Source: Paraphysomonas bandaiensis
Lineage: Eukaryota > Protista > Chrysophyceae
Direction: 5' to 3'
DNA: 64,000 bases
NCBI GenBank assembly: GCA_965644295.1
Contig: CBFFRP010000069.1
Coordinates: 124,001 to 188,000, forward strand
Shown here: piece after piece, positions 6,031-46,978 of the stretch
Position numbering within the stretch: position 1 is the stretch's first letter
How the letters are laid out: every line of letters starts with the position of its first letter
Notes under the pieces: generated by a model
Databases searched by the model: none
The model's input: the letters and a program-made list of their open reading frames with translations, nothing else
Told to the model about the DNA's origin: nothing
Made by a program: the position numbers and the translations under genes

Positions 6031-6130
6031 ATCTATAGTCAATACAATGAGATATAATCACCTCATTAAAGACTGTCAGTGCATTTAATGGTGTATCATA
6101 TTATGCATCATGTGTGTATAGGCAGTCAGT

Positions 6131-6271
6131 AGCATCTTATTTTTCGGAAATATATTGAAGCAGATATTCTCTATATTATTGCAGTACAACTACGGCTGGT
6201 ATACAGATAATTGTTGTCTCAATATTAGAGGCATCTTTCAAAAAAAATATACAAAGGATGCCAATACGGTG
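6131..6271 (+). mobile_element. ~135-bp dispersed non-autonomous element, copy 1
   Basis: 54-bp core (6185-6238) identical to 33537-33590; reverse-complement copy at 25841-25972; ends AGCATC...GGATGCC. Confidence 0.75.
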
Positions 6272-12138: not shown

Positions 12139-12165
12139 ATAAAGATCTTCTCCCTCACATTCAAG

Positions 12166-12358
12166 AGCGGAAGTGGTCGCACCTTGGTGCTTGGGGCAAC
12201 GCACAAACAGCTTTCGTAGCGTTACATAGTAGAATATGAGAATATGCACTAGTTAGCTACAGGTAGAAGCAAGTACATCTCGTCTTGACTAGTTTTCATC
12301 TCCAGCTACTTATCTGGTGCAGATTCTCGACGCCTATTGCTAATAATAAGACTTTCAT
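12166..12358 (+). repeat. Dispersed repeat copy B (retroelement-like 3' end)
   Basis: Aligns with 291-478 and 39247-39432. Confidence 0.7.
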
Positions 12359-12381
12359 ATATTAGTAGGGGTGTTGTATGG

Positions 12382-25840: not shown

Positions 25841-25972
25841 AGCATCCTTTGTTTATTTTTGTTGAGAGATGCCTCGTATATTGAGACAACAATTATGTGT
25901 ATTCCAGCCGTAGTTGTATATCAGTAATGTGGAGTGTTTTTGCTTCAATTTATTCCCGAAAACTTAGATGCA
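25841..25972 (-). mobile_element. ~135-bp dispersed element, copy 2 (inverted)
   Basis: Reverse complement of 6131-6262 (GATGCCTC.TATATTGAGACAACAATTAT.TGTA..CCAGCCGTAGTTGTA). Confidence 0.72.
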
Positions 25973-29400: not shown

Positions 29401-29745
29401 TAAGTCTAGGCAGCTACTATATACTATATATTATAGATAGTTGTGCAGCTTGTATCTTCCGTCTTTGAAACTTGGTCGTTCGTTAGTAATGAACCACGAT
29501 ACTAATTGTTACATTACCAATATAGAGTGTGTCGGTTCATATATATTCATTCCTTGACCACTTCAAATAGAAGAAGTATAGAGAACAAAAAACTAAATAT
29601 CCGTAGAGACTACTAGTCACGAAAACACTATTGGACAAAGAGTGAGAATTCGACATAAACTTAAATCTAACTGGAGTGATACCAACAATGCAATATCAAT
29701 GAAAACAGAAGTTGCACAACGGACAATAATGATATCCATGGTGCG

Positions 29746-32700
29746 CTATGTTGGAGACCCTTCGGTGGTCCAATCAGTTCTACTAACAGCACTAACCAAC
29801 TGCAGCAGAACATGAGTTAAATTCTACAGGTAAACTGATGAGTACGTACATCTTTTTGGTCAACATGACACTGATGGTGTTTTGCTATATGATCACCACG
29901 TATTTGCTGTCGTTTCTGCGAGAACACTGTCATTCTTTCCTTTATATAGTCCAATATCAGATCAATAAAGTGATAAAAAGTATATATACCCTATATTTCT
30001 CCTCCATCACATGCAGTTGTTTGTCTAGATCATTCTTTCTATTTATTAGCCGATCATACTCCCGCCTATAACTCTCTTCTGCCTTCTCCCGCTGTGCGGC
30101 TATGTTGGATATCATGTGTGCATAATCCTTGTCAATTCTACTAATAGGTTACCACATTTATGGTACTATACAAGCAAACCCTTACTTTACTATTCCTTCA
30201 TTATACTTTGACAGTAGGGCGATGTACTCTTCGTCATCTTCGCAACTGCTGTCATCGTCAGAGGCATCGGTATTCAGTAAATCTAGATCAGACCCATACC
30301 CTATATTCCAAGTAACATATCATCAAAAGTCACGGAACACGATTATTGAATTCCAACCTTTGGGTTTGAAATCCGATTCCACGGGACCATTCCCTACAAC
30401 GTATCCATCAGAGACCGATCGCACCGTTCGCCTAAGTGGGGGCTCCGACTGTCGACGAGAGTCCAAATTAGATTGTAACTGCGCCGCCGGGTGAATCCCA
30501 CTAAGGTCCGGCGCAGAAGATATATGGTGCAAGCCCAGAGATGGTGCAGTGAGAGATGAGATAGGCCGTTTGTCAGGGCTCCTCATTTCATGCGGAGACT
30601 GGGAAGAAACAATACCGGAATTACTGATGACAATATTTTGAACTATCCTCTCATCAGGGGAGTCAGCTTCAAGTTCGGACCTCGACCTATCTTTAGACCT
30701 TTCCACCGCCGCACAGCTCAGCGCTGCCAGTGCTCGATCGTCATATACACCCGGCGTTTCCAGGAACTTCTCGATGACCATTTCCGACAGCTGTGGCTGA
30801 TTTTGACCACTATCCAATTTCTCGGCTGCCTTCTCCCCGGCCACTCGCCGAGCCACATCTACCACAGGGGAGATGGAAGCAACAATTTGATCCGCGTACT
30901 CAGCAAGAAAAGTCAATTCTTCTACCTCATTCATCTCTTCCACTATTGTCTGTGGGTCATCCTTAGCTAGATCGAATTCAAACTCTACCTCTTTGAACGT
31001 ATTTTCAAAAGGAACACGTAGTCGGAATATGAGGCATTTGTCTTTGTTGCCGCCGGCTTTGTCCTCGAGATCAACAACACCGAGAAAATTATCAGCAGGA
31101 GATCCTGATATCGGGGAATTTAGTACATGGTCAAGTGGTTTCATATGTTGAGATGCCGGGATTGGTATCGGCGAAGGTGGATGTAGCCCGTTTATTAGTT
31201 GGGATTGTCGCAAGCTGCACTCATGGAATTCAGAAAGCGACGAAGACCGACTGCGATGTGATTCCTCTGGGCGGCAGACCCTCAGCACTCGACTTGCTAC
31301 TTTACGCATATCTGTTCCATTAGACTCACATGACAGCTTCTGATGTTGTTGATCACTATCATCTGACGTTGGAAGATCAGTTTCCACAGCGGTAGGTGTT
31401 GATGAGGGCCCACCACCACTTGGCACATGCTTCGGACTATTCATCCCCTTATCATCTCCATCGTTATTCGAAGTCTCAAGAGATAAATTTTGATGGTCCT
31501 GGCATTCTCCGCGGTCAAATATCCTCTCCAATGGCTCCGCCTCTTGCACTATATCGAGAGCTAAAGGTACTGATTTCGAGCGAGTGAGGGGGCTACATTC
31601 CTCCAGTTCAGAGACCACAACATGAGAAGTGCTCTTGCTTTCCTTGCTACACAGCAGTGGTTTTTCCGAAGACGCATTCCCACTTCTATCTGACTCACTA
31701 TCATCATTGTCTTCATCTTCGCTATCACTGAAGTCTTCTACAACTGTATTGAGTCGTACTCGAACCTCTAGAAAATCGTCCTCCTCATTAGGAACTAAGA
31801 ATTCGTCCAAGAGGAGCTCAGCGGCCGAGGGGCGACTGAGTTCAGGGCGCAAACAGGCTTCAATGAACCGCTTAGCACTGTTGAACTGAACTCGAACTAA
31901 CTCTGGTGGAAGCTCGCCCTGCAGACAATCAATCATACATCAAGCGAAGTCAATATACCACTGGGCGAGAAATATAAACGAAAACGGGAACTTACATTGA
32001 GAACTTTTTTGTATATTTGAGCAGCGGATGTACATTCGTGGTAGGGTGTTAGAGCAGTAACCATCTCCAAGCAAGCCATTCCAAATGCATATATGTCAAC
32101 CTTCTCGTTATAGTTTTCATCGTAGAGCTCAGGGGCCATGAATTCGGGGGTTCCGAGACACGTCATTGCTGCGGCAGTAATCTGGCGGGAGTGATCATCA
32201 TTTGCAGGCCCATCATTGGATGTCTTTGCAGTAGTCCCATTCGATAATCGCCCTTCGGATATACGTGTTGACAATCCAAGATCTCCTGTATGCGCTGTTA
32301 GTAACAGGCAGTGCAAGAACATATACACACAATGTCGCCATACCTATTCTGAGATCCCCAGTGGAGCCATTGATGAAAATGTTGTCACACTTAATGTCTC
32401 TATGAATAATCTGCCGACCATGCAAAAACTCCAGACCTTTGAGGATCTGTCGACACCATCTCTTCACTGCATTCCATCGAATCATAGGATTCTTTTTGAT
32501 ATAACTGAGTCAATGAGTAAGCAACGAAAAGTGCATGCGTAGATAAGAGACGTACTCTTTCAGTGACCCTGACGACATAATCTCCGTGATAAATACAATT
32601 TCCTCCCGTTCACGGTTTACCCAAGAATTGTGGTATTTGATTACGTTCGGGTGTTCTAAATCCTTTAGAAGTTTTACTTCTGTTTTTATGCGTCTACGCT

Positions 32701-33030
32701 CACTGGGTGGAACTCGACTGAGTTTGATTACATTCCAGGCAACTTCAATTCCTTCATTCGTGTCATAGGCACGCCATCTGAAATAAACTATTAGTCTCGA
32801 CACATAGACTAAACAAAAAAACTTACACATCTTTGTAGGCACCCGCACCTAACCTCTCCTCAAGCTACCAACAAACATCACCATCTAATAATAAGTATTA
32901 ATGACGAACTCACCCTGACATAACGCCCTTGGGGTGATGATATAATGTTCTCATCATTTGGAATCCCTTTAGCATCTTTATAATCCTCTTTTTTATCAAC
33001 TTTCTCAGTATTTTTCTCAGTGACAGACAT
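29746..33030 (-). CDS. WNK: WNK family Ser/Thr kinase, multi-exon
   Basis: LGAGAYKDV (catalytic Lys in subdomain I), [50 protein letters not shown] (PF2-like domain), C-terminal coiled-coil exons. Confidence 0.9.
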
Positions 33031-33482
33031 AATAAGTAACTACTATATATATTATACGACTATTATATGAGTAGATACGACCACTACAGGTCTAAACAAA
33101 CTATAAATCAATACTTAAAATATAAGGACATCTTTATTTGTAATAATGTCCTTTTAACAATGCTTTTATGGTTGTTATAACCCTTATAAAACAAGCAATG
33201 TCTTATCTTAAATATCTAACCAGACCCACCACACCACGTATTGATATCTTGTATATGTATCAAGTACCTATAAAGGCAAACTTGTACATATCAACAATAT
33301 CTAATAACTATATGTGGGACTAGTTATAGACTGTAATGTATATATAGAAGGTGTATGTATAACCACACTTAACATCACATCGTATCTACTCAACACTCTA
33401 CACAGATTTCTATATATTAGAATTCTCTATAGTAGTTTTGTGTATGGAGGTTGATGAATGACTGTGGGACGTATAGGTAGTC

Positions 33483-33623
33483 AGCATCTTATTTTTCGGG
33501 AATTAATTGAAACAAATATACTCTATATTTCTGAGATACAACTACGGCTGGTATACAGATAATTGTTGTCTCAATATTAGAGGCATCTTTGAACAAAAAT
33601 ATACAAAGGATGCCGATACGGTG
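33483..33623 (+). mobile_element. ~135-bp dispersed element, copy 3
   Basis: Aligns over its full length with 6131-6271. Confidence 0.75.
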
Positions 33624-33888
33624 TTGATTGTATAAAGGTATACAGCAGTATATACCATATACGTATCAGACAAGTGTGGTGTTGGGTACTCCAATGAACC
33701 ACACTATATATCACAAAATATTTTCAGTTTATGTCAGAAGGGCAACTATTTAAGATACTTTTATTCAAAAGTGACCGTTATTTTGGCGAAATGGTTCAGT
33801 GGCAAAGAAACAAAATCGAGTTGCAATCACAATTCAACACTCGAATTGAATAAACAAAAGCGATATAAAAAACTATAAACAAACGACA

Positions 33889-35319
33889 ATGACAAACTTG
33901 AACTCAAGCGATGTCGCCGACTTCGAGTCTATGCTTGCTCTTGATAACCCTATCAAGTCAAGTGTGCTTCCTAGATGGCAAAGAAAGCAGAATCAGCAAG
34001 CCGACCAACAACAGACTGGTGATAGGTTCATTCCCAGCAGATCTGGAACGGATTTTGACAATTCCCAGCATCTTTTTCTTGGAGATAGCGATTCTGTTGA
34101 TGATTCATCCAGTTCCGATTTCCAGAAGATGCTTGCTGCCGGAATTACTGGTCAGGATCCATCCGATAAGCAGGGAACTAGAGTTCTTGCATACAAAAAC
34201 AAGGCACCAGCTCCGCAAGAAGGGTATCAGAATTCAATGAAGGTCTTGTATTCAGTACAGCAAGGAAAGAAATCAGATATGGTTAAGCCTACTCGGCATA
34301 TCCCATCTGCTCCTGTTCGTATCCTGGATGCTCCTGACCTACTTGATGACTATTACCTCAACCTGTTGTCGTGGAGTTCCACGAATGTTCTCGCAGTTGC
34401 TCTCTCACAGAGTGTATACCTTTGGGATGCTGCTAAGGGAAGCATTCAAGAACTCATGACTGTGGACGAAGACCCCAACGACTATATCTGCTCCGTGTCC
34501 TGGATCCAACAAGGTGGAACACATGTTGCCGTGGGAACCGCGAACAACACTGTTCAGTTGTGGGACGTTCAAGCTGGCAAGCAAGTTCGTTCCATGGACG
34601 GTCACTCTGCCCGCGTTGGAGCTTTGGCTTGGAACGGTCACTTGTTATCCTCTGCGTCACGAGATACCACTATCATTAACCATGATGTGCGTATCCAAGA
34701 CCATAAGGTCGGGGTCATGCGCCAACACACACAGGAAGTTTGCGGTCTTGCTTGGTCTCCAGATGGAACCTATCTTGCGTCGGGAGCCAATGACAATACC
34801 CTATGCATATGGGACGCCGGAAACACGCAGTCTGCGAATGCCCGTGCGCGTCACCAGCTCACCGATCACCAGGCCTCCGTCAAGGCACTCGCATGGTCAC
34901 CCCATGAGAGAAACTTGCTCGCTAGCGGAGGGGGCACGGCTGATCGATGCATTAAGTTCTGGAACGCCTCTAGTGGGAGTTTACTGAACAGCATCGACAC
35001 CGGCAGTCAGGTGTGTGCTTTACAGTGGTCACCCTTGGAGAAGGAGATTCTGAGCAGTCACGGTTACGCCGAGAACCAGCTCTCTCTCTGGAAGTACCCT
35101 ACCATGGTGCGCACCAAGGAACTACGTGGACATACATCTCGCGTACTGCACATGGCAACATCTCCGGATGGATCCATGGTTGTCTCTGGGTCGGCTGATG
35201 AGACTCTGCGTTTTTGGAATGTATTTGCAGGTGATGGAAAGAAGAAGAGCTCCGGAGGAAGCCTGGCTACAGCTGGTGGAGTACTGCGCAGCAAGAAGGG
35301 AAGCCTTAAGATCAGGTAA
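33889..35319 (+). CDS. CDC20: APC/C activator CDC20/fizzy
   Basis: C-box DRFIPSR, RVLAYKNKAP (Mad2-binding motif), ILDAPDLLDDYYLNLLSWS, WD40 repeats, terminal IR tail; intronless. Confidence 0.95.
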   Translation: MTNLNSSDVADFESMLALDNPIKSSVLPRWQRKQNQQADQQQTGDRFIPSRSGTDFDNSQHLFLGDSDSVDDSSSSDFQKMLAAGITGQDPSDKQGTRVLAYKNKAPAPQEGYQNSMKVLYSVQQGKKSDMVKPTRHIPSAPVRILDAPDLLDDYYLNLLSWSSTNVLAVALSQSVYLWDAAKGSIQELMTVDEDPNDYICSVSWIQQGGTHVAVGTANNTVQLWDVQAGKQVRSMDGHSARVGALAWNGHLLSSASRDTTIINHDVRIQDHKVGVMRQHTQEVCGLAWSPDGTYLASGANDNTLCIWDAGNTQSANARARHQLTDHQASVKALAWSPHERNLLASGGGTADRCIKFWNASSGSLLNSIDTGSQVCALQWSPLEKEILSSHGYAENQLSLWKYPTMVRTKELRGHTSRVLHMATSPDGSMVVSGSADETLRFWNVFAGDGKKKSSGGSLATAGGVLRSKKGSLKIR

Positions 35320-35590
35320 GTGGCACACCAACACTTACACCATATTATATGTATTACTGCAGTTTGATTATATACTTCAGTATTTTTATTTCTGTGTTAT
35401 TGTATATACCACATGCGTGTTATTGTATATATATATACATGTTGTACAGCTGTGTATGCTTCAGTTACTTATTACCAGTATATGTACAGTATATGTATGA
35501 TATTACACATATATACACCCACACACGCTTTTCTAAAAGCGACCTTTTTTCGGAAGTTTGGCGACATAGTTTAGTTTAGGAAGTTCAGTG

Positions 35591-35701
35591 TGTTACTTGT
35601 TACTCGTATTTTTTCTTCGCTCATTACTTTGCTGTTACGTAAATAATCAGTCTGTTACTTGTATTTTTTCTTCGCTCATTACTTTGCTGTTACGTAAATA
35701 A
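35591..35701. repeat. Local tandem duplication (about 55-bp period)
   Basis: GTATTTTTTCTTCGCTCATTACTTTGCTGTTACGTAAATAA occurs twice. Confidence 0.8.
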
Positions 35702-36253
35702 CAATAGTTTATTGCAATGCTCCTCTCATTATTATGTATGGGTATAGTGGCTTCAACCGGTAGAGTAGTAATAGTAGTCCTGTTGTCACACCATTGTTGT
35801 GTACACCGAAGTATAGGTTTCCCTGCTTGTAGTTTAAATGAGAACACCGAGAGATTTGACTCAGTCAGTCCTAAAAATGGTCAATCACAGCTAAACCTAC
35901 CATAGGGTTGTAGGAACTGTCAAGAGAAATGGCAAAATGTTTTCAGCAACGGGTTTGTTATGTATTTTATATTATTATGATATTGAGCCTCGCATGAATT
36001 AGGTTGTGATTCATTGGAATCAAAATTTGCTGGAGAAGCAAATAGACTACTTACGAAGACAACGCACACAAGGCAGGTAAAAGACAAGACAAGCACTGTC
36101 ATTTTACAAGCACCATGCACAGTGGGACAAACTTTGTTAAAGAGCGCCCATGGAATAGTACACATACATTGAATGGCCACAAAAAGCAACCTAAATGCAA
36201 TCCCTCCCTATAACACGATACGCTACCCACACTGCTGCCAGCCCCTAAAGTGC

Positions 36254-37036
36254 TCACTCATGAGCGAATTTGCAGGTGTCACCATACGTGCATTCGCCTC
36301 TCTGAAAAGCGTGGCAGTAGAGTTTCGTCTGTGGCTGTCCGTCCCCATTTACCTCATCGTGTGAATACCGGCACCTGTCTCCATATGTGCACTGTCCACG
36401 CTGGAAAGCGAAACATGGGTTGCGTCTCTTATGGGGCTGTCCCTGACCTCTGTGGGGGGGGGCATATCCGAATGCACCGGGCTGCTCCATCCCGTAACCC
36501 ATGGGGTATCCTCCGTATCCATTAAACATACCGAAAGCACCTTCGCCATGGCTGTATCTGCAATCCGAACCAAACATACACTCTCCGCGCTGCTGGAAGG
36601 TGTAACATGGTTTGCGCGGAACGTTTCCCCCACCGTACCCATACACAGGCATACCGTATGCATCCAACATCATGTAATTCATCGGGTAATTTCCATTAGT
36701 ATTTTCTCTGCTTAATTTTTTCTGAGCTCTGCATGGTTTGCAGCGAGTGGGTTGTCCCTCAAAACCTTTCATGCTATAAAACTCTTGCTCTCCAACAGTA
36801 AACAAAAATGTACATCCACAATCACGGCACACAAGAGAAATATCACCTTCAGAAGCCTCATAATCCATACCAGTAGGAATTTGTTGATTCGTTGTCATTT
36901 CCATTTTTTCAGTACCACCATTTTGTGTGATTTCACCATTAGATGGAGTTTCATCAACATGTTTCTCATGATTCAGTTCATTATGGCTGTGACCATTCAT
37001 CATATCACTTACAGGTTCACTGTTAACAAATTCCAT
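36254..37036 (-). CDS. RNA-binding protein: CxxC zinc ribbon (zf-trcl-like) + three CCCH fingers
   Basis: LVCRDCGCTFLFTVGEQEFYSMKGFEGQPTRCKPCR, then three C-x7-C-x5-C-x3-H-type fingers (CYTFQQRGECMFGSDCRYSH and two more). Confidence 0.85.
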   Translation of the reverse strand: MEFVNSEPVSDMMNGHSHNELNHEKHVDETPSNGEITQNGGTEKMEMTTNQQIPTGMDYEASEGDISLVCRDCGCTFLFTVGEQEFYSMKGFEGQPTRCKPCRAQKKLSRENTNGNYPMNYMMLDAYGMPVYGYGGGNVPRKPCYTFQQRGECMFGSDCRYSHGEGAFGMFNGYGGYPMGYGMEQPGAFGYAPPHRGQGQPHKRRNPCFAFQRGQCTYGDRCRYSHDEVNGDGQPQTKLYCHAFQRGECTYGDTCKFAHE

Positions 37037-37545
37037 AGCCACAATATTAAAAAAAACTAAATGTGGCGCGTAAGAAAATTAATGAAAGGTTTAGGTTATA
37101 TATCCTAAACCAACTCTATGTATATGATTTGATGTAATGAGGTCATTCACTGCATCTGATTGTGTGTTACAAGACCCAAACTACCACAAACAACCACACC
37201 ATACATAGCTATAGCTATATACAGTATATATATATATATATATGTATTTTTTTCAAATCAAAATTTGAGTTAAAGTACAAAAATTCTTTCTACCCAAAAA
37301 AATGAAAATATTGAAATGAAAAAATCTCTGACTCTTTAAGATATAAAAGATTGAAAAACGAAACCGACATCATATATTAAAAAAAAAAACGACAAAAACT
37401 TGCAAAGAAATTACTGCAAGCTTGATACATACATACATACACGTTAACATCAACAGACTTAACTGTCAACTAGACAGACATACATACATACATATATATA
37501 TATATATCATTACAATAGATCTGCATTAGAAAGCAGTATTATATT

Positions 37546-38682
37546 ATGGCAAATCCTACTGTCAGAACTTTACCAACTCCATTAACATTAGATGATTTTG
37601 ATGTGGGAGTTACACTTGGAACAGGATCATTTGGTCGAGTCCGTTTCGCCACTCATAAGGTTGCTTATATATAATGATTATATACCATATAACTATGATA
37701 TATGATAGACAACTGGTTCATTTTGGGCTGTTAAGATGTTGAAGAAAGCAGAAGTTATTAGACTTCAACAGGTTGATTGACTAAACTAGTGATTGATTAG
37801 TAGTTCATGAGTCTCATCAGGTGGAGCATATGATATCAGAGAAAAACATTCTTACAAACTTAGATCATCCATTCATTGTTCGTCTATCTGGGACATTTCA
37901 AGGTAGAAGCAAATGCTAACACTCAGTCTCGTCAGTTATTTAACCCTTTCCCTTCAGATGTAAAGTTTCTTTACATGGTCTTGGAGTACATCGTTGGTGG
38001 TGAGTTTTTTACGCACTTACGGAAAGCAGGGCGCTTCGACCACCAGGCATCCAAGTTTTATGCGACTCAGATTATTCTCGTCTTCGAGTACATGCATACT
38101 TCTGACTTTATATACAGAGATTTGAAACCTGAAAATCTGCTTCTAGACAAGCTCGGGTTTCTCAAGATAACCGATTTTGGTTTTGCCAAGCGGGTAGCTT
38201 TCAAAACGTATACCCTTTGTGGTACACCAGAGTATATTGCTCCAGAGGTACTTCTTAACAAGGGTCACGGTAAAGGCGTTGACTGGTGGACCCTAGGCAT
38301 CCTTCTTTACGAGATGATGGCTGGCCAGCCACCTTTCGTTGATGACGATCCTATGGGAATCTACCAGCAGATTCTTGCCGGCAAGGTTACTTTCCCAAGA
38401 CACTTTGATAGAAATGCCAAATCTCTCATTAAGAAGCTATTGGTGGCTGATCTGACGAAGAGGTACGGCTGTCTGAAGGGTGGGGCGGATGACATCAAGA
38501 AACACAAGTGGTTCCAGGGATTCGACTGGGACGCTCTCCTTGCTCGCCAGCTGACAGCGCCAATTGTTCCTGCTGTGTCAGGAGATGCCGACACATCAAA
38601 CTTCGATCCATATCCTGACTCACTTGAAGAAGCGCCTTTACCTGTGCTGGGACAGAATAAAGATCCTTTCGTGGACTTTTAG
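37546..38682 (+). CDS. PKA: cAMP-dependent protein kinase catalytic subunit, 4 exons
   Basis: TLGTGSFGRV, YRDLKPEN, DFGFAK, TYTLCGTPEYIAPE, terminal FxxF (FVDF). Confidence 0.93.
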
Positions 38683-38959
38683 ACAATTCTCCGGAACGCA
38701 CCGAGAGCGACAGATGTAAAAATAAATGTTTATCGAGTTGCGTAGTTCTTGAGTATTGCGAGTAGTTCCATGTATTTTGAATTGGTAGTCGGGCTGTTGG
38801 GTTGCTAAATTGTCTATTGGTCTTGATTGTCTGCCCCTTGCTTTCCAACAGTAACTTATCCGGTATGATTAATATGTACCAAGGCAACATCAGTTATAGA
38901 TATACTATTTGATGAAAAAAGTCAGTCGTGAAATTAATCTTAATAATAAGTAGTTAAAT

Positions 38960-39155
38960 TAACTTAATTTAATGTGCCATTCATTTGCTATGCTAAACAA
39001 ACTGTCACAAGCATTGGTAGTGCTGTATGAATGCTTCAGTGTGGTACATACTTTCGGTCGTTCTTGAGTAAACAAATGGCCTCGTCTTCCTCATCATCCT
39101 CTTTCTCTTCATCGAATTATCAAAAAACTATTACCATTAATGGTTACCGGGTCCA
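38960..39155 (-). pseudogene. hAT transposase dimerisation-domain relic next to a TIR-like sequence
   Basis: Minus strand LKHSYSTTNACDSLFSIAN; adjacent ATTAATGGTTACCGGGTCC resembles the MITE right TIR. Confidence 0.5.
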
Positions 39156-39191
39156 ACGTCCAACCTGTGTCTTCTTCTATATCACGCTGAA

Positions 39192-39432
39192 GCGCCGGTG
39201 AGTCCACGGACACACGATAAAGGCGAATTTCATATCACACAAAAAGAACGGAAGTGGTTGCACCTTGGTGCTTGCGGCGACGCACAAGCAGCTTTCGTAG
39301 CGTTAAATAGTAGGATAAAAGAGTTTGTATTGATTAGTTACGGGTAGTGGTCTAACTAGTATGACTAGCATTCTTCTAGCCACTAATTGATGCAAGGTCT
39401 CAACGCCTATTGCTAAATAATCAGACATTCTC
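39192..39432 (+). mobile_element. Insertion containing dispersed repeat copy C, flanked by a perfect 60-bp direct repeat
   Basis: 39132-39191 is identical to 39433-39492; interior 39247-39432 aligns with copies A and B. Confidence 0.72.
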
Positions 39433-40625
39433 TACCATTAATGGTTACCGGGTCCAACGTCCAACCTGTGTCTTCTTCTATATCACGCTGAATACTCAGT
39501 ACTACGTACTACGTACTACTATCTCGAAATATGCGTCTGCACCCAGGGTAGTGAATAATTAAATCATCGAATCATCCAGATCAAGCTGTACTTATCCATC
39601 TGATTAAAAAAGTTACAGCGATGTTAAACCATCTCATAAATGAGAAAAAACACTCCAATTCTGGCACGATCTACTTCGCTTGGGATTAATCTCAAGACAT
39701 CAACATCCACGCAGATAAGTGGACAATTCCATATACTTCTTGACTATCATATCATTACATGTACTCCGTCTGTCAACAACTTAACCAAATATACTCGGTA
39801 ATACTTCATTAAGGTTGTTCTGGGTATATTTTACAAGTTGGACTGTTTCTTGATACTCTCGCGACAAACAAATAAGTAGATCATCCATATAACCACCTGC
39901 TAGTTGTAGCAGTGATACACATTCCAGGGGATAAGGCGACACCTTCCGCTTGACATAACCATCTAAATGACTAATATAGTGGTCCCCAACGAATACGTAA
40001 CATCACTCACACTACTAAACCGTTGAGTATCTGTAATCAGCTTATGCTCGTGTGGAGGTATCACGACGATCGTTGTGAAGGTGCTCAATTTGTTTTATTC
40101 CAACAATCTTTGACATGTTATTACTCTGCGTGGTGAGGTTATAGTGCATACTGGCCCTTTTACTGTGTCAGACTATTACGATTGGAAACGATAAAGTGAC
40201 TGCACATACATCCAAGTTCTTCCCTGCTAATAATAATGGGTTTACACCTATGGTATAGCTATATACAGTCTGTTGAATAGTGAATAGAGAAGTGGTTGAC
40301 TGTATTATGAGAACTAATGTAGTGAATGTTTTATTGCTAGCAATAGGCGTGTAAGAGTCAGAACTATTGTCACTTGTCAGAAACAGAAATATTATGACTA
40401 TTCAAGATACGGAAGTTTAATAGTTGTTATTATCAGAATGATGAAATTATGTTGGTGATGACTTTTATGCGCAATGTCTCAAGTCTCATGTGCTAATGCA
40501 ATAATAATACTAATCACCTACTATCTAGTCCAGGGCTGCGAAATGGTACTTGCAATTAAATTGCATGGAATTTACGTAACGACATAACTTCTCTTTAACA
40601 TATAAGGAAGTCAATGCATCTAAAC

Positions 40626-40697
40626 CAGGACCTTGTAACCGTTTATGGTAATTGCATTAATAACCATTTATGGATCATTAATAGGTACCAGGCCCTG
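40626..40697. mobile_element. 72-bp hAT MITE
   Basis: Imperfect TIR CAGGACCTTGTAACC / GGTACCAGGCCCTG; perfect 8-bp TSD ATCTAAAC; lies just after another TIR-like start CAGGGCTGCG at 40531. Confidence 0.82.
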
Positions 40698-41270
40698 ATC
40701 TAAACATGTCAAAACTAGATATTGCAGGCATTATTTTTAATTTAGTTGTTACAAGTGTAGCAACGTAAGACTAACGTTTCGGTGCACGTAACAGAATAAC
40801 AAAAGGAGTTTAAATGCTAATAGCTTATTAGACAAACCTTAAGAAGAGAGACATTACGAGACTCGCAACTTTAGTTGATTCCAACTGAGTAATATAACTA
40901 CCTAGTCTAAAACACTTAGCCTTTCTTTCACGACCAAATTTCGAATTGTCACCTGAAACCAACATTTTGTCAAGTTGTACTATTACTGAATATAGTTCGA
41001 AAACTCCAGCCGGAGATGGCCAAAGAATAAACAATTCCTAAATGTCTTCATGTGAACGACAAGATACGGCGAATTATCAATATCTACCCGTCATGGAAAT
41101 CTACATCACTGCAAAACACGAAAACGTCAATATTAAATTCTATGACAATGTAATATAAATAATAAACACAATCATTGGCACGCTGCAGAGTGGAAAGTAT
41201 TCAATCAAGGCCAGGACACCAGATGCAATACTTCCCCACGCTGCAAACCGACTGATTGACGTTATCATAA

Positions 41271-43592
41271 TTAGAAACGAAAGGCATCTGAGTCGTGACT
41301 AGAAACCGGCGACCGATCAGCACTGGCGGGGGAGCGCCCTCGAGAGCGCGGAGGGTGGAGCTGGAAGTATTGCTGCTGTCCCCCAGTATACATCTGGGGG
41401 TTCCTCTGCGCGCGGATAGCAAACCCCATTAAGAAGTGGTAGATCATTTCTGCCATAAGAAGCCCAGACTGCTTTTCTTCCACGTCTGGGTTAAGGCCAC
41501 TAATGCTGAACACAGCAACCTACGCATATACTGTGACCACAGTAGAGCCTCATATACGAAAATGCCATACAAGTACACATAATGTCACAGAAGTAAGCAC
41601 TTACGTTAGGATCAGACCCTGATGCCAGGCACATATCAAGAGCCTCATCACTAGACAAGCCCGAGGAGTTGAGACACGAACGTCCAGGACAGGCAGCACT
41701 ACTGAGGGCGTTCATCGAGAAAGACACGAACACTGGCCTCTTGGAACTAGGACCCGTAAGCGTCCGTATAAGATGATGAAAAGCCGGGGGAGGCGGGATA
41801 GAGTGGCTACTTTGACTACCTGTGCCTGATCCCCGTGCAGATTGCGAATTCGGCTGTGAGAATTGCTCCTTAGCTGGTGCTGAGAAGCCGGGAGGCAAGT
41901 CATCCACATCCACAGAGGTTGCATTAAGATACATTTGAACCAGTTCCTGTTGCTGTTGACTGTGCAAATGGCCTGCAACTGAGCCTTCCTCTGAGCCGTC
42001 AGAGTTTGTGGTATTAGAATCACTCCTGGCAAAAGCTCTCAGAATGTCTTTCCTGCGTATATCCTTGGTAAGCCATAGCACAGACCCTCCTCTATTATAA
42101 ACGAAATCCACGTTCTCTTGGCTACAATAGGCGCCCTGTACAGCATAGGCAATAAATTTCCCGTCACACCAAGGCTCAGAGCGCAGCCCATCCCTAGGGG
42201 GACAAAAGCGTGTGTCACTCAGGAGCAGACGAGTGGCAGAAGCGGCTTCAATCTTACCCTCCGTTGTCTACGATATCACACAAGAACGGTTACCATAACA
42301 GACAACTCATCAAAGAACGCTCTACAATAAATAAAAATATAATGAGGCCATACACTCACCATGTACTGTACGTTCAGTCTCGAGTTTACACTGATGACTC
42401 CTATTGATCCCCCAGCCACCCCCATGAGACCGGCGGCTGTGGCATAGGACTGATCCTCTGCGCCGCCCACTACTAGCGGTACTCCTCCGCGCCGCACAAT
42501 CTCTGCTACCGCCTCATCTAGTCGAGATAATGCCTCTTCCAGGGTCAGACCTAGGGCAATGTCTCCAGTGTCCACAAAAGACAGGGCTGTGAGATCCAGA
42601 CCAAGCTCCGGATTGTTCGGTGCAGAGAAGAGGCGACGAAGATGTTGTCGAGCCACTCTCGACCCTGCAGCCGCGCCAGGTAGTTGACCAGAGCGCTTTG
42701 CTCCTTCGTCATACGGGAAACCAATGATTGCCACACACCCTGCGTATACGTCCATAACACTGCAGCGACGTATAAACGAATACAGTCCACCCTCAAAACT
42801 CTCCGCGGAGGCCTCTAAGGAAGCTACATTATTAGGGAATGGTGCCTTAGACACATTGAATCGAATTGCGACGCGAGGAACATTAACCATGAGCTCAGGT
42901 TTGTATTCATTAGCTCGCTGAATTTTGAGTACACTAGCACGATACACAATGCCGTCGAGTTCCAAGCACGCTTGTGTCAGCTCTATAGACTTCAGCTCAA
43001 TGAATGCGAAGCACTTTTTGTGATTCATGTATACAGAAAGTATGTATGAGTTGTTGTTCTCCTCCTCTAAGCACTTACTGATAACATCATTGAGAAAGTT
43101 CTTCAACTGATCTTCGTTTGTCTGACCTGGGGGAATGCCACCTACATAGAGTCGCCGCGCATGTCTGAAATAATGTGAACCACTACTGACAGTTTCCGTC
43201 GCATAAGTTTTCTCAGCAGATCCCCCCTCATATAAATACCCATCAGATACATTTGAAGACATAGGAACAACATGATTTGAAGATGGAAATGGAGGAGAGG
43301 ATAAAGGAGGACCTCCCATCCATCTATCAGTATCTGAATGAGCTCTAGTAATTCTCATTCCATAATTATCACGTTCAATATTCGATGAAAAATTATATGG
43401 ATCAACTGAACCAGTAGATGATAATGATCTTGAACTCATTTCATTATATCCACGATGATCAGTATCTATATTATTCCATCCATATTTATTTAACTCTGTG
43501 ATATTTTTTGGGAAATGATTATCATCATGTTTATTTCTTGGATAATATTGTTCAAAACTTTCAGACCATGGATCAGGTCCTCCAGAATTCAT
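41271..43592 (-). CDS. U2AF65-like RRM fused to a catalytically degenerate formiminoglutamase/arginase-family domain, 3 exons
   Basis: ARRLYVGGIP...KCFAFIELKS...LDGIVYR..LKIQRANEY (RRM); IIGFPYDEG, DTGDI, PLVVGG.EDQSY, FIAYAVQGAYCS, VFVSF, CPGRS, LNPDVEE (ureohydrolase); introns 42359-42268 and 41604-41520. Confidence 0.85.
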
Positions 43593-44323
43593 GACAAAAG
43601 AAAAGAAAAGAAACCCTACAAATATATTTAATTATATATATATATATATAGTGACATGAGATGCTAGTAGTAACACACTGCTGTATTGTATCTCATCCTA
43701 TAGATATAGAGGTAGAGAGAAGATGCGGTATATACCATATATATCTCTATATATAGATACCTGGGATACGTACAGAAACGGAATATTTCATGGACTTCAA
43801 ATGAAAATATCTTGAAGGGATATATTCAATTTTTTTTTATTTGAATGAAAATTTTAAAAAGGAATTTTATTTGGGAAGTATATGGTATAATGTGTACTGA
43901 TAGACACATAGAGTGTGTACTGATAGACACATAGTGTGTACTGACAGACAGAGGATTCAGTAATAGACACAATATGTATGAGTACTGATAGATATAGTGT
44001 GTACTGCTATACTGCTGTACCTATAGAGTATACCTTGTCCAACCAGACATCTACATTACAAATCATACACTCTACTCATAGAAGAACACACACATACTTA
44101 AACAAGGAAGAATTCCTCACTCTTAACCAGAACACACTACTCTATCATCATAACATATCCTCAACATCCCTCCATGCTCATATATCATTAAGACATCTGA
44201 TATATATATACACGTGGTAACATTAGAGGTGTGTGTTACATACATACATATAACTACAATACAGTGGTGTTTATATGAGAGATAGAGTGATAGTTTAATA
44301 CTATAGTGTGGGATACATTATCT

Positions 44324-46978
44324 ATGGCTTGTTTCCCTAATAACATTAAAGAATCATCATATATATTACGAACAGATGTTTCACTATCATCTGTTCAACA
44401 ATTCTTAAGTACTCATATTGGTACATCACATGCTGTATATGTACATGGTGACTCTGCATGTGGAAAGACATCGTTCTTACGATTACTTATGCATGATGAT
44501 AATCTTCAGTGTTGTTATCGAACCCGAAAGTATTGGGTCACTGTGGGAAAAGTTGAAACACTTAAGGAACTATTAGTCATTTTTGATTTCGTTGGACAGC
44601 AAATTATATCCGACCACTCGTCTAGTCGTGATTGTATATATCGACCTGGAAATATTGAAGATTGGATTTTATATATAAAAGATTGCATTGGTAAAGGCAG
44701 TACTATTATTGTGTTGGATGATGTTCGTGATCAGTTCGTTGTCGATACGTTTCTAGCTTTGGGTGTGGCTCTAGTTGTGTCCAGCACTCTTCTGGATTTG
44801 AAATTTATCGATACACATGTGCATTCTATTTCTCTTGGGGATTTGTGCCAAGAAGATGTATTGAGTCTAACACAAAATGTTATTGGACCATCATTGCCGC
44901 TTGAGGCTTCCCCTCATAAACTTTTAACAGACATTTCACGATCCCCCCTTGAGGTGTTGATGTTGTGTACGATGATTGCACGGTCTGTCGACAGGTCACA
45001 GTCATACATGGAGTCACTGGTTGCTCGCCGGGCTGGTCTTGCAAGTGGAATGATGGATGCTATGGACCAGGAAAAAGGGATTTCGACCCATACGAGTCCA
45101 CTAACAGCAAATGCTCTTCCCCATCCCAGGAGTCCTGCGACATCTTCCGGTCGATGCAGCGGTCGTAGTGGAGACACACATATCGTGACATGGGACGAGT
45201 CGCGGATGCGACGGGTATCGATATATATCACTATGCAAATGGTTCTCAGTACCCTTCCGGAACACCTTCAAGCTAAGTACGTACTCTTAGCTGTGCTACC
45301 CAGAGGCTCTCCCGTCTCTATCCCATTTTTATGTGCCTTGTGGAATGTTAACGAATCTACTGCGGTTTCTGTGGTGTCCGACCTTCATGCAGCGCACCTA
45401 TTGGAGTGGGAATTTATTCTTCACAACTCGCAGTGTCCTTTGCGCGACACCCGACTCGTAACTCTTCATGATATACAGCACGATTACATAGCTACTCTTC
45501 TGTCTCAATCTATCTGGGCTAGTAGGGCAAGTATTGCAGCGTCGCGTGCAGCTGAGTATCTGTCCAGTTCGGATGCGCATTGTGCAGATGATCCATTGTT
45601 TCCTCATTCATTGGCTACGCCGTGTCGCCTCGTGAGATTGGGGGTCTATTGGAGGCAGGTATGTTGTGCTCCCTGCCTGCCTCTCAATATATGATGTGTA
45701 TCTCCTGTATAGATATTAGACTTCCAGCAACGCGGCTTGGTTTCCAACGACTACTCTCCACTTGCTCTCTTTGATAAACATATTCAAGAGATGCATCACT
45801 TGTCTGATGTATCTGCGGCTGTGAGTTACATCAAACACGCGTGTATTGTGGTGGAAGAGATTTGCATGGAAGAGGTGTGAGTTATTTTGTATTTCTTCGG
45901 AAGCTGATTTATACGTATATAGGTTGTTACGCTGATTGAATGGTACCGTCTTCTGCTTCGCCTCATGGAAGAAGACCCGCTGAGTAGCCACACAGATATC
46001 GCTCTGTGTATGGACAGCTACGCACTTTTGCTCCTCCATTCTGGAGATGAAGCAGGTGCCGAGGCGGCTTTTCTTCAGTCCTATCGTATCAACTCATCAG
46101 TGCATGGTCGAGAGCACTGTAGTGTTTCATCGGCTGCCTCTCGACTGGCGATATTAATGCAGCGGCAGGGGAGGTTAGCAGAAGCCACCGATTACATGCG
46201 CGATTCTGTAGAGATTAAGTCAAAGTTACATGGAACGAGACATCTACGAGTTGGACGGGAGCTTAATAACCTCGCAATGCTTCATTCTTCTCAGGGAATG
46301 TATTCCGAAGCAACTCTTTGTCACATGGGTGCAATATATGCCTTCCAGTCATCTCTTGGCGAGGAACACGTTGAAACTATTAATGCCCGTGGTAATATGG
46401 GTATCACACTCCTTCTTCAAGGAAATCAGGCTGGCTTGGGGGTTCTGCAAGATGTTATATGTCTTCTGATGCAATCAGGGATTCCTACTACCCACCCGTG
46501 GATGAAAAAGTTTGTCGCTCATGCACGCGCACCTCAGCGGGGAAATGAGGAGGGAAATCTTGTTGACGATCTTGACATATTGCCGCAGTTGGAGACTTTG
46601 AGGCCTCCTCGACCTTCCTCAAAACTTGAGAATAGTGAGAAGGGGTCTGGTAGTAGTAGTAGTAGTAGTAGTAGTGGGTGTCGACATGGAAGATTGGGTG
46701 TGTTGTCGAAGACTTCAATGAGAGATTCATACCACTTGCATCCCTTATCCCATGCAGGGTCAGATGTAGGCTCATTCAATAAGTTCGTAGAAGCGTACTC
46801 AGTGCGTATGACTGATTCGCCTTCTCACTTAGAAATGCTCTCTTCCTCGCTCCACCATCCAGAAAATGAGATGAGTCCTGTGTGCAGAATATCTCAGGTG
46901 CCAGCTGAAAAGTGTGCCCGTGGAGACGTTGATGATAGCGATAGACTTCCTTACGCCGCACTCGTTCTGACTGAGTAG
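44324..46978 (+). CDS. NB-ARC (APAF1-like STAND NTPase) + TPR protein, about 3 exons
   Basis: Walker A GDSACGKT, Walker B IIVLDDV, winged-helix LAVLP...LCALWNV, MHD-like LHDIQHDY; kinesin-light-chain-type TPRs (ELNNLAMLHSSQGMYSEA, LGEEHVET..ARGNMG); start codon uncertain. Confidence 0.8.

Follow-up and report, generated by a model that had tools for sequence, protein, structure and literature searches.

A U2AF65-type RNA recognition motif fused to a formiminoglutamase-type fold without metal ligands in chrysophytes

In RNA-binding metabolic enzymes of the IRP1/aconitase type an enzyme fold is linked to RNA binding and catalysis is lost, and an arginase-like protein of Trypanosoma brucei is reportedly a metal-free pseudoenzyme of the arginase fold that has lost its metal-coordinating residues. 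Here we analyse a three-exon gene on the minus strand (43592-41271) of a 64,000-nucleotide stretch of the genome of Paraphysomonas bandaiensis (Chrysophyceae; assembly GCA_965644295.1, contig CBFFRP010000069.1, positions 124,001 to 188,000), which we call the window and in whose coordinates positions are given. Its product of ~714 aa joins an RNA recognition motif (RRM) like the first RRM (RRM1) of the splicing factor U2AF65 to a ureohydrolase (arginase-family) fold resembling formiminoglutamase (FIGase). Metal-free arginase-family pseudoenzymes are known, their functions being mostly unknown and the family commonly homomultimeric; one of them, the metformin hydrolase subunit MetCb/MfmB, offers a likeness in that it has retained the arginase fold without metal-coordinating residues and acts as a non-catalytic binding partner (PMC11271267).

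The T. brucei protein and MetCb/MfmB differ from the window protein in being stand-alone members of the arginase or agmatinase branches, unfused to an RNA-binding domain, and in IRP1/aconitase the enzyme fold itself binds RNA, whereas the dead fold of the window protein has a dedicated RRM attached to it. The architecture is new but its parts are known, since RRM proteins and metal-free arginase-fold pseudoenzymes have each been described already. In a literature search we found no paper in which an RNA recognition motif is combined with formiminoglutamase or with ureohydrolase. To this extent we agree with an earlier reading made from the letters alone (the sequence-only reading), which knew of no described protein of this kind; the architecture is nevertheless widespread in public chrysophyte data, where family members carry automatic names such as 'arginase family enzyme'. 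The RRM points its partner, a metal-free arginase-family fold, towards RNA biology, and the gene shows a domain of a core splicing factor put to new use in a group of protists that has received little study. We hypothesize, at a probability of about 0.55, that it belongs to a chrysophyte-wide RNA-binding fusion of a U2AF65 RRM1 duplicate with a non-catalytic formiminoglutamase-type domain that serves as a structural module.

Gene structure and the U2AF65-derived RRM

The exons of the window gene were searched one by one; for the fold and the Pfam coverage of the full-length protein we turned to P0001, a sequence derived from a transcript of a paralogue on contig C120 and 76% identical to the window protein in exon 1. 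The features of the gene are listed below, with confidence in the P0001 model given as pLDDT (predicted local distance difference test) and the proportion of nonsynonymous differences from the paralogue as pN.

42360 to 43592, minus strand: exon 1, 411 aa, one open frame with the start codon, N-terminus, RRM, linker and first third of the ureohydrolase fold
43182 to 43592, minus strand: low-complexity N-terminus (aa 1-137); P0001 counterpart predicted disordered, pLDDT 31-49
42894 to 43181, minus strand: RRM derived from U2AF65 RRM1 (aa 138-233), with the N-terminal extension RHARRLYVGGIP (RNP2) and KCFAFIEL (RNP1)
42753 to 42893, minus strand: linker (aa 234-280), an ANEYKPE motif and then a flexible stretch, with low model pLDDT at 248-268
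42360 to 42752, minus strand: ureohydrolase fold part 1 (aa 281-411) with GFPYDEG, DTGDI, VVGGAEDQS and VNSRLNV, matched by PF00491 and Trypanosoma cruzi FIGase
42456 to 42458, minus strand: E379, aligned to the presumed Asn114 of T. cruzi FIGase (GGNDQS in the wild type and GGHDQS in the N114H variant, against GAEDQS)
42372 to 42386, minus strand: NSRLN (N403, R405, N407) replacing the DxHxD metal ligands, aligned to VDSHLDV (4mxr) and IDSHLDV (the unfused relative P0096)
42268 to 42359, minus strand: intron 1, 92 nt, GTGAGT...GTAG, phase 0; the paralogue's mRNA is spliced at the same position
41605 to 42267, minus strand: exon 2, 221 aa, ureohydrolase fold part 2 and a lineage-specific disordered insert, matched by T. 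cruzi FIGase
42232 to 42249, minus strand: EAASAT replacing the HSG(S/T)PF loop, as aligned
41758 to 42027, minus strand: S/Q/P-rich insert (exon-2 aa 81-170), fast evolving (pN 0.30); P0001 residues 478-572 have pLDDT 30-42
41710 to 41718, minus strand: SMN (S184 and N186 of exon 2) replacing the DxD metal ligands, FSFDVDSL being aligned to VSFSMNAL
41520 to 41604, minus strand: intron 2, 85 nt, GTAAGT...GTAG, phase 0, spliced at the same place in the mRNA of the paralogue
41271 to 41519, minus strand: exon 3, 82 aa and stop, with the last strand and helix (LNPDVEE...YHFLMGFAIR), matched by T. cruzi FIGase residues 276-311, and the RS-like tail PPRSRGRSPASADRSPVSS

A 438-aa open reading frame (ORF) at 43592-42276 on the minus strand, open from the first ATG 3' of an upstream stop, takes in the RRM-like segment (aa 138-233) as well as 130 residues from the beginning of the Arginase-family domain. 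The exon-1 donor, GTGAGT at 42359, is in phase 0 and at the position used in the C120 paralogue's mRNA, and both introns (42359-42268 and 41604-41520) are of the GT-AG type and in phase 0. Position 41271, given as the end of the feature in the sequence-only reading, proves to be the last base of the stop codon. From the N- to the C-terminus the protein comprises a disordered N-terminus, the RRM, a flexible linker, the ureohydrolase fold and an RS-like tail (PPRSRGRSP...DRSP) that is conserved in the C120 paralogue.

The resemblance of the RRM to U2AF65 RRM1, previously proposed from the letters, is borne out by phmmer searches of the PDB, in which human U2AF65 RRM1 is matched with an E-value of 7e-16 by the whole of exon 1 and of 4e-18 by the domain alone; PDB matches of the RRM are to U2AF65 RRM1 exclusively, with no other RRM near. 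The domains are ~40-48% identical and share (T)R.ARRLYVG.IP, K.FAF.E and LKI.R...Y.P. The N-terminal extension and RNP2 of the window protein, RHARRLYVGGIP, align with RQARRLYVGNIP of U2AF65; RNP2 is present as LYVGGI, RNP1 reads KCFAFIEL against KNFAFLEF in U2AF65, and the C-terminal LKIxRxxxYxP is matched as well. Within its own genome, the next-best match of the fusion RRM (48% identity, E 7.5e-25) is the RRM1 of a complete U2AF65 on contig C406, with RS, RRM1, RRM2 and UHM, which has TRHARRLYVGG and KCFAFVEL.SIELT.AC..LDG in common with the fusion family. Because of this match, we regard the fusion RRM as having arisen by duplication of RRM1 from the U2AF65 of the lineage itself. The C406 gene (L010, G000:C406:5776-9072, minus strand) carries its RS-rich N-terminus and RRM1 in an ORF at 1366-2337 and RRM2 and UHM in an ORF at 571-1365, presumably with an intron between the two.

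The Pfam profile RRM_1 scores the window protein at 16.9 bits, under its cut-off of 20.7, and falls similarly short in P0001 and in the Mallomonas member P0029. Of the two domains that Pfam had been expected to recover, it thus returned Arginase (50.7 bits against 22) and missed the RRM. Three things therefore carry the RRM call: the match to U2AF65, the U2AF65 encoded by the genome itself, and the fold predicted for the paralogue, whose AlphaFold2 (AF2) model, built with the family alignment, has the beta-alpha-beta-beta-alpha-beta topology of an RRM at residues 149-228 with pLDDT ~80-88. With RRM_1 below threshold, the architecture would be hidden from Pfam-based architecture catalogues.

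A domain that copies U2AF65 RRM1 so closely, N-terminal extension included, could belong to a splicing-factor paralogue that acts at polypyrimidine tracts as a competitor or a helper of U2AF65, the dead domain taking the place of RRM2 and UHM. The RS-like tail of the window and C120 copies and the Gly/Arg-rich tails of Mallomonas-type members would suit such a protein. However, RRM1 is all that it has of U2AF65: the RS domain proper, the U2AF35-binding segment, RRM2 and UHM are missing, so that it does not qualify as a U2AF65 orthologue. We consider this account unlikely; it overlaps with our hypothesis of an RNA-binding fusion with a structural module rather than excluding it.

A ureohydrolase fold and its former metal site

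Each of the three exons finds its best sequence match in T. cruzi formiminoglutamase (4mxr/2a0m): exon 1 aligns with residues 32-152 (E 5e-21), exon 2 with residues 165-220 and 229-272 (E 1e-9) and exon 3 with residues 276-311 (E 5e-3). This collinearity supports the gene model independently of gene predictors. PF00491 (Arginase) scores 50.7 bits on exon 1, against a cut-off of 22, and 17.9 bits on exon 2 alone; full-length P0001 reaches 72.8 bits, and Mallomonas P0029, matched over profile positions 3-277, reaches 108.6. In the AF2 model of P0001 the ureohydrolase fold occupies residues ~275-475 and 575-675 (pLDDT 70-95), with the N-terminus, the linker (248-268), the insert (478-572) and the tail disordered. 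When this model was searched with Foldseek, the top matches were the T. cruzi and B. subtilis formiminoglutamases (TM, template-modelling score, 0.75-0.85, normalised by target), the T. cruzi enzyme ranking first (0.80-0.85, likewise target-normalised). Chains of metformin hydrolase are among the fold and sequence matches. A search of the ESM Atlas gave no usable feature match.

The window protein and T. cruzi formiminoglutamase have in common GFPYDEG, GD(I), GG..DQS, QG..C, PG.S and NP.VEE, and every motif quoted in the sequence-only reading is found in the window: GFPYDEG, DTGDIA, VVGGAEDQS, VNSRLNV, EAASAT, VQGAYCS, FSMNAL (for FDVDSL), ACPGRS and LNPDVEE. The two proteins differ at the metal site, where VDSHLDV, FDVD, GGNDQS and HSGSPF of the enzyme correspond to VNSRLNV, FSMN, GAEDQS and EAASAT, respectively, and in the extra N-terminal RRM, the long disordered inserts and the RS-like tail of the window protein. 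In place of the ligand set of catalytic ureohydrolases (DxHxD, DxD and the His/Asn of GG(D/N)H/DxS), the window protein has NSRLN, SMN and E379, the last at a position that we take to be Asn114 in T. cruzi FIGase (a numbering drawn from PDB titles and alignments) and His in arginases. The HutG-type signatures have likewise changed, HSG(S/T)PF to EAASAT and RNxGRxGA to KRSGQLPGA; both are kept in T. cruzi FIGase and in the canonical proteins P0096 and P0128. The six ligand positions thus read E, N, R, N, S and N, with no His among them. The earlier claim that NSRLN, SMN and EAASAT leave this domain without its binuclear-metal ligands therefore stands, and, judged from these residues, a binuclear Mn site is impossible in the window protein.

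The chrysophyte family, the sister copy and selection

By word-index search we obtained 98 relatives in one search and 73 in another, most of them with both RRLYVG and GFPYD. Some 85 (~85) are fused homologues that share the architecture, the complete ones being 600-1000 aa long. The named members are all Chrysophyceae: Paraphysomonas, Mallomonas annulata, Epipyxis sp. (two copies), Chromulina nebulosa and Chlorochromonas danica. No fused member from UniRef or nr was among the search results, and outside the fusion family a profile search matches ordinary U2AF65 proteins only. The linker motif ANEYKPE is family-invariant (columns R228-E235 of alignment A1); the S/Q/P-rich exon-2 insert is missing from Mallomonas-type members in the family alignment, and Gly/Arg-rich tails are found in these same members.

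None of the ~85 fused members retains the canonical DxHxD and DxD; in P0096 and P0128, two relatives that lack the fusion, these ligands are all present. The replacements differ from clade to clade: Paraphysomonas has NxRxN with SxN, or NxQxN with SxH; Mallomonas has DxRxG with HxS and an intact HSGTPF loop; another clade has NxHxN with HxE; and yet another has SxHxD with DxG, the loop being deleted. In real ureohydrolases the metal-ligand positions are invariant. When the columns of the fold are ranked by entropy in a full-length alignment of 16 family sequences, those of the HSGSPF loop and of the six former ligands fall at the 57th-90th percentile; mean column entropy is 0.71 in the RRM against 1.47 in the fold. 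From the variable and clade-specific state of these columns, we conclude that the site was released from constraint and eroded independently in separate lineages. Motifs of FIGase type are invariant in the family (GFPxDxG..R, D.GD, GGS.D.S, QG..C and NPxxEE).

The C120 copy has the same three-exon structure and architecture as the window gene, with 76% aa identity and the dead motifs VNSQLNV, FSMHAM and EAACAT. The surrounding DNA is also related: window positions 29745-43598 are collinear with C120:10189-22815 at 70-77% nucleotide identity, across at least four coding stretches. We considered whether the C120 copy might be an allele and ruled this out, given coding identity of 70-77% and saturated synonymous sites; for the same reasons we regard the two genes as old duplicates within a duplicated block. 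The collinear block suggests that a segment of this chrysophyte's genome, or the whole of it, was duplicated long ago.

P0001, from the Paraphysomonas transcriptome MMETSP1103, is identical to the C120 exons, and L021, a 2730-nt contig of the same transcriptome, matches C120 at 99.7-100% in three blocks, both introns having been spliced out. A single mRNA from the sister copy thus covers the RRM together with the entire ureohydrolase fold, and its intron positions are those inferred for the window copy. By the same matches, the genome is that of the transcriptome's Paraphysomonas strain (taxid 36769) or of one very near to it. Exact-pattern scans of metagenome contigs for a transcript of the window copy gave no match, although one of the patterns also missed L021, which contains it. 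The transcript evidence thus belongs to the C120 copy and not to the window copy, which is what can be said for an artefact or a decaying gene (a chimeric model, a misassembly or a pseudogene). Against this stand the two domains in one open exon, the intact three-exon frame with GT-AG introns, the syntenic paralogue of the same build with its spliced mRNA, the ~85 homologues and a pN far below the corresponding proportion at synonymous sites (pS). For the family as a whole the artefact reading is refuted, and for the gene at hand we think it very improbable; the sequence-only reading, which had argued from the open exon that the fusion is no gene-model artefact, was right.

We compared the window and C120 copies by Nei-Gojobori counts, aligning the exons separately and pooling the codon counts. 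In the RRM, pN is 0.022 and pS 0.77, and in the exon-2 insert they are 0.30 and 0.76, so that the ratio of the corresponding rates (dN/dS) is not computable in either (pS >0.75). The ureohydrolase fold has pN 0.105 and pS 0.675, giving a dN/dS of ~0.07 with dS saturated, and the N-terminus has pN 0.23 and pS 0.48 (dN/dS ~0.36). The ratio for the fold is far below 1, the value near which the sequence-only reading would have been refuted. By these counts, purifying selection on both folded domains is strong. Homology to an enzyme family, loss of the catalytic residues and purifying selection together make the domain a pseudoenzyme by sequence criteria, and in this sense the selected pseudo-enzyme proposed earlier is upheld (ligands lost, pN 0.105 against pS 0.675 in the fold).

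What the dead fold may contribute

Our hypothesis of an RNA-binding fusion with a structural module can be set out as follows. RRM1 of the cell's own U2AF65 would have been duplicated, and the copy joined to a formiminoglutamase-type ureohydrolase domain. The fusion protein would bind RNA through the RRM, and its target is probably U- or pyrimidine-rich, because RNP1, RNP2 and the U2AF65-type N-terminal extension have been kept. The ureohydrolase domain would act without catalysis, most likely as a structural module, either as a homo-oligomerisation platform that multiplies RRM valency or as a docking surface for a partner. A single RRM binds RNA weakly, so that multimerisation would give avidity. 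We favour oligomerisation or docking because the old active centre is unconserved, the arginase family is commonly homomultimeric and MetCb is purely a binding partner. The RS-like or Gly/Arg-rich tails would fit a role in a ribonucleoprotein or in nuclear RNA processing.

Some of our own results weigh against this hypothesis. The RRM_1 profile does not reach its cut-off; the dN/dS figures are approximate, dS being saturated; the pocket-lining motifs shared with real FIGases are invariant, so that a ligand-binding pocket is possible; and a subclade of metagenome-derived members (P0006, P0016, P0018, P0019, P0031 and P0114) has Asn-His-Asn and His-Glu, conserved within the clade, at five former ligand positions, which in principle could form a different metal site.

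This last arrangement, with His, His and Glu at ligand positions, bears on the idea that the domain is still an enzyme, using a different metal site or none, with the RRM directing it to RNA or ribonucleoproteins (e.g. to RNA-bound or protein substrates). Strong purifying selection on the fold is compatible with such a role, as is the retention of the invariant acidic and basic residues D293, R298, R313, E327, D339, D342, D378 and E649. However, no candidate catalytic set is conserved family-wide at the old active centre, and the window protein itself offers no His at the ligand positions. We regard a surviving enzyme as quite unlikely.

The invariant pocket-lining motifs, which lie outside the metal ligands, speak instead for a metabolite-gated RNA-binding protein, in which the relic pocket would bind formiminoglutamate (FIGLU), arginine or a related nitrogen metabolite and its occupancy alters RNA binding or splicing. 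Metabolism bears on this idea as well. An intact FIGase paralogue was not found in the organism's own genome, where the best matches to canonical P0128 are the two fused copies; the check for an intact HutG paralogue suggested by the sequence-only reading, run with P0128 as query, thus came back negative. The other ureohydrolases of the genome are an agmatinase-like protein (C19), a guanidinopropionase-like protein (C362) and a canonical arginase (C373), and FTCD had no match in the genome. Genes for histidine ammonia-lyase and urocanase are neighbours within ~6 kb (G000:C358:39511-45902), and N-formylglutamate amidohydrolase is encoded at G000:C371:173770-174468. From the presence of these three enzymes and the failure to find FIGase or FTCD, we infer that FIGLU is probably made and is removed by another route, the one suggested by the amidohydrolase. 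This context makes a metabolite sensor possible and does not support it.

The former ligand columns and the HSGxPF loop, by contrast, belong to the more variable part of the fold, the loop being deleted in some clades, and the RNxGRxGA stretch that follows GFPYDEG is degraded. A conserved site would not be expected to vary in this way, which weakens the case that a metabolite sensor has been conserved where the metals once bound. We therefore hold metabolite gating to be improbable. Its broadest form, a lineage-wide regulator in which a nitrogen metabolite such as FIGLU, arginine or a related guanidino compound, through rearrangement of the oligomer, switches a U2AF65-type RRM on or off at pyrimidine tracts, seems to us more doubtful still; if true, a single protein would directly connect the breakdown of amino acids in chrysophytes with the processing of pre-mRNA or with translation. 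A conserved small-molecule sensor is less likely than a structural module. Of the two functions offered by the sequence-only reading for the pseudoenzyme, oligomerisation, its alternative, would fit better than ligand binding.

Two further features of the window lie outside this gene. Dispersed repeats of 150-240 nt, 75-87% identical, occur at 297-487, 6113-6268, 12157-12362, 25842-25971, 33471-33620 and 39192-39430, and several more copies are present on C120. A 462-aa ORF on the plus strand (44306-45694), which begins ~700 nt upstream of the start of the RRM-ureohydrolase gene and is head-to-head with it, has a weak NB-ARC/P-loop NTPase match (PF00931, 24.7 bits).

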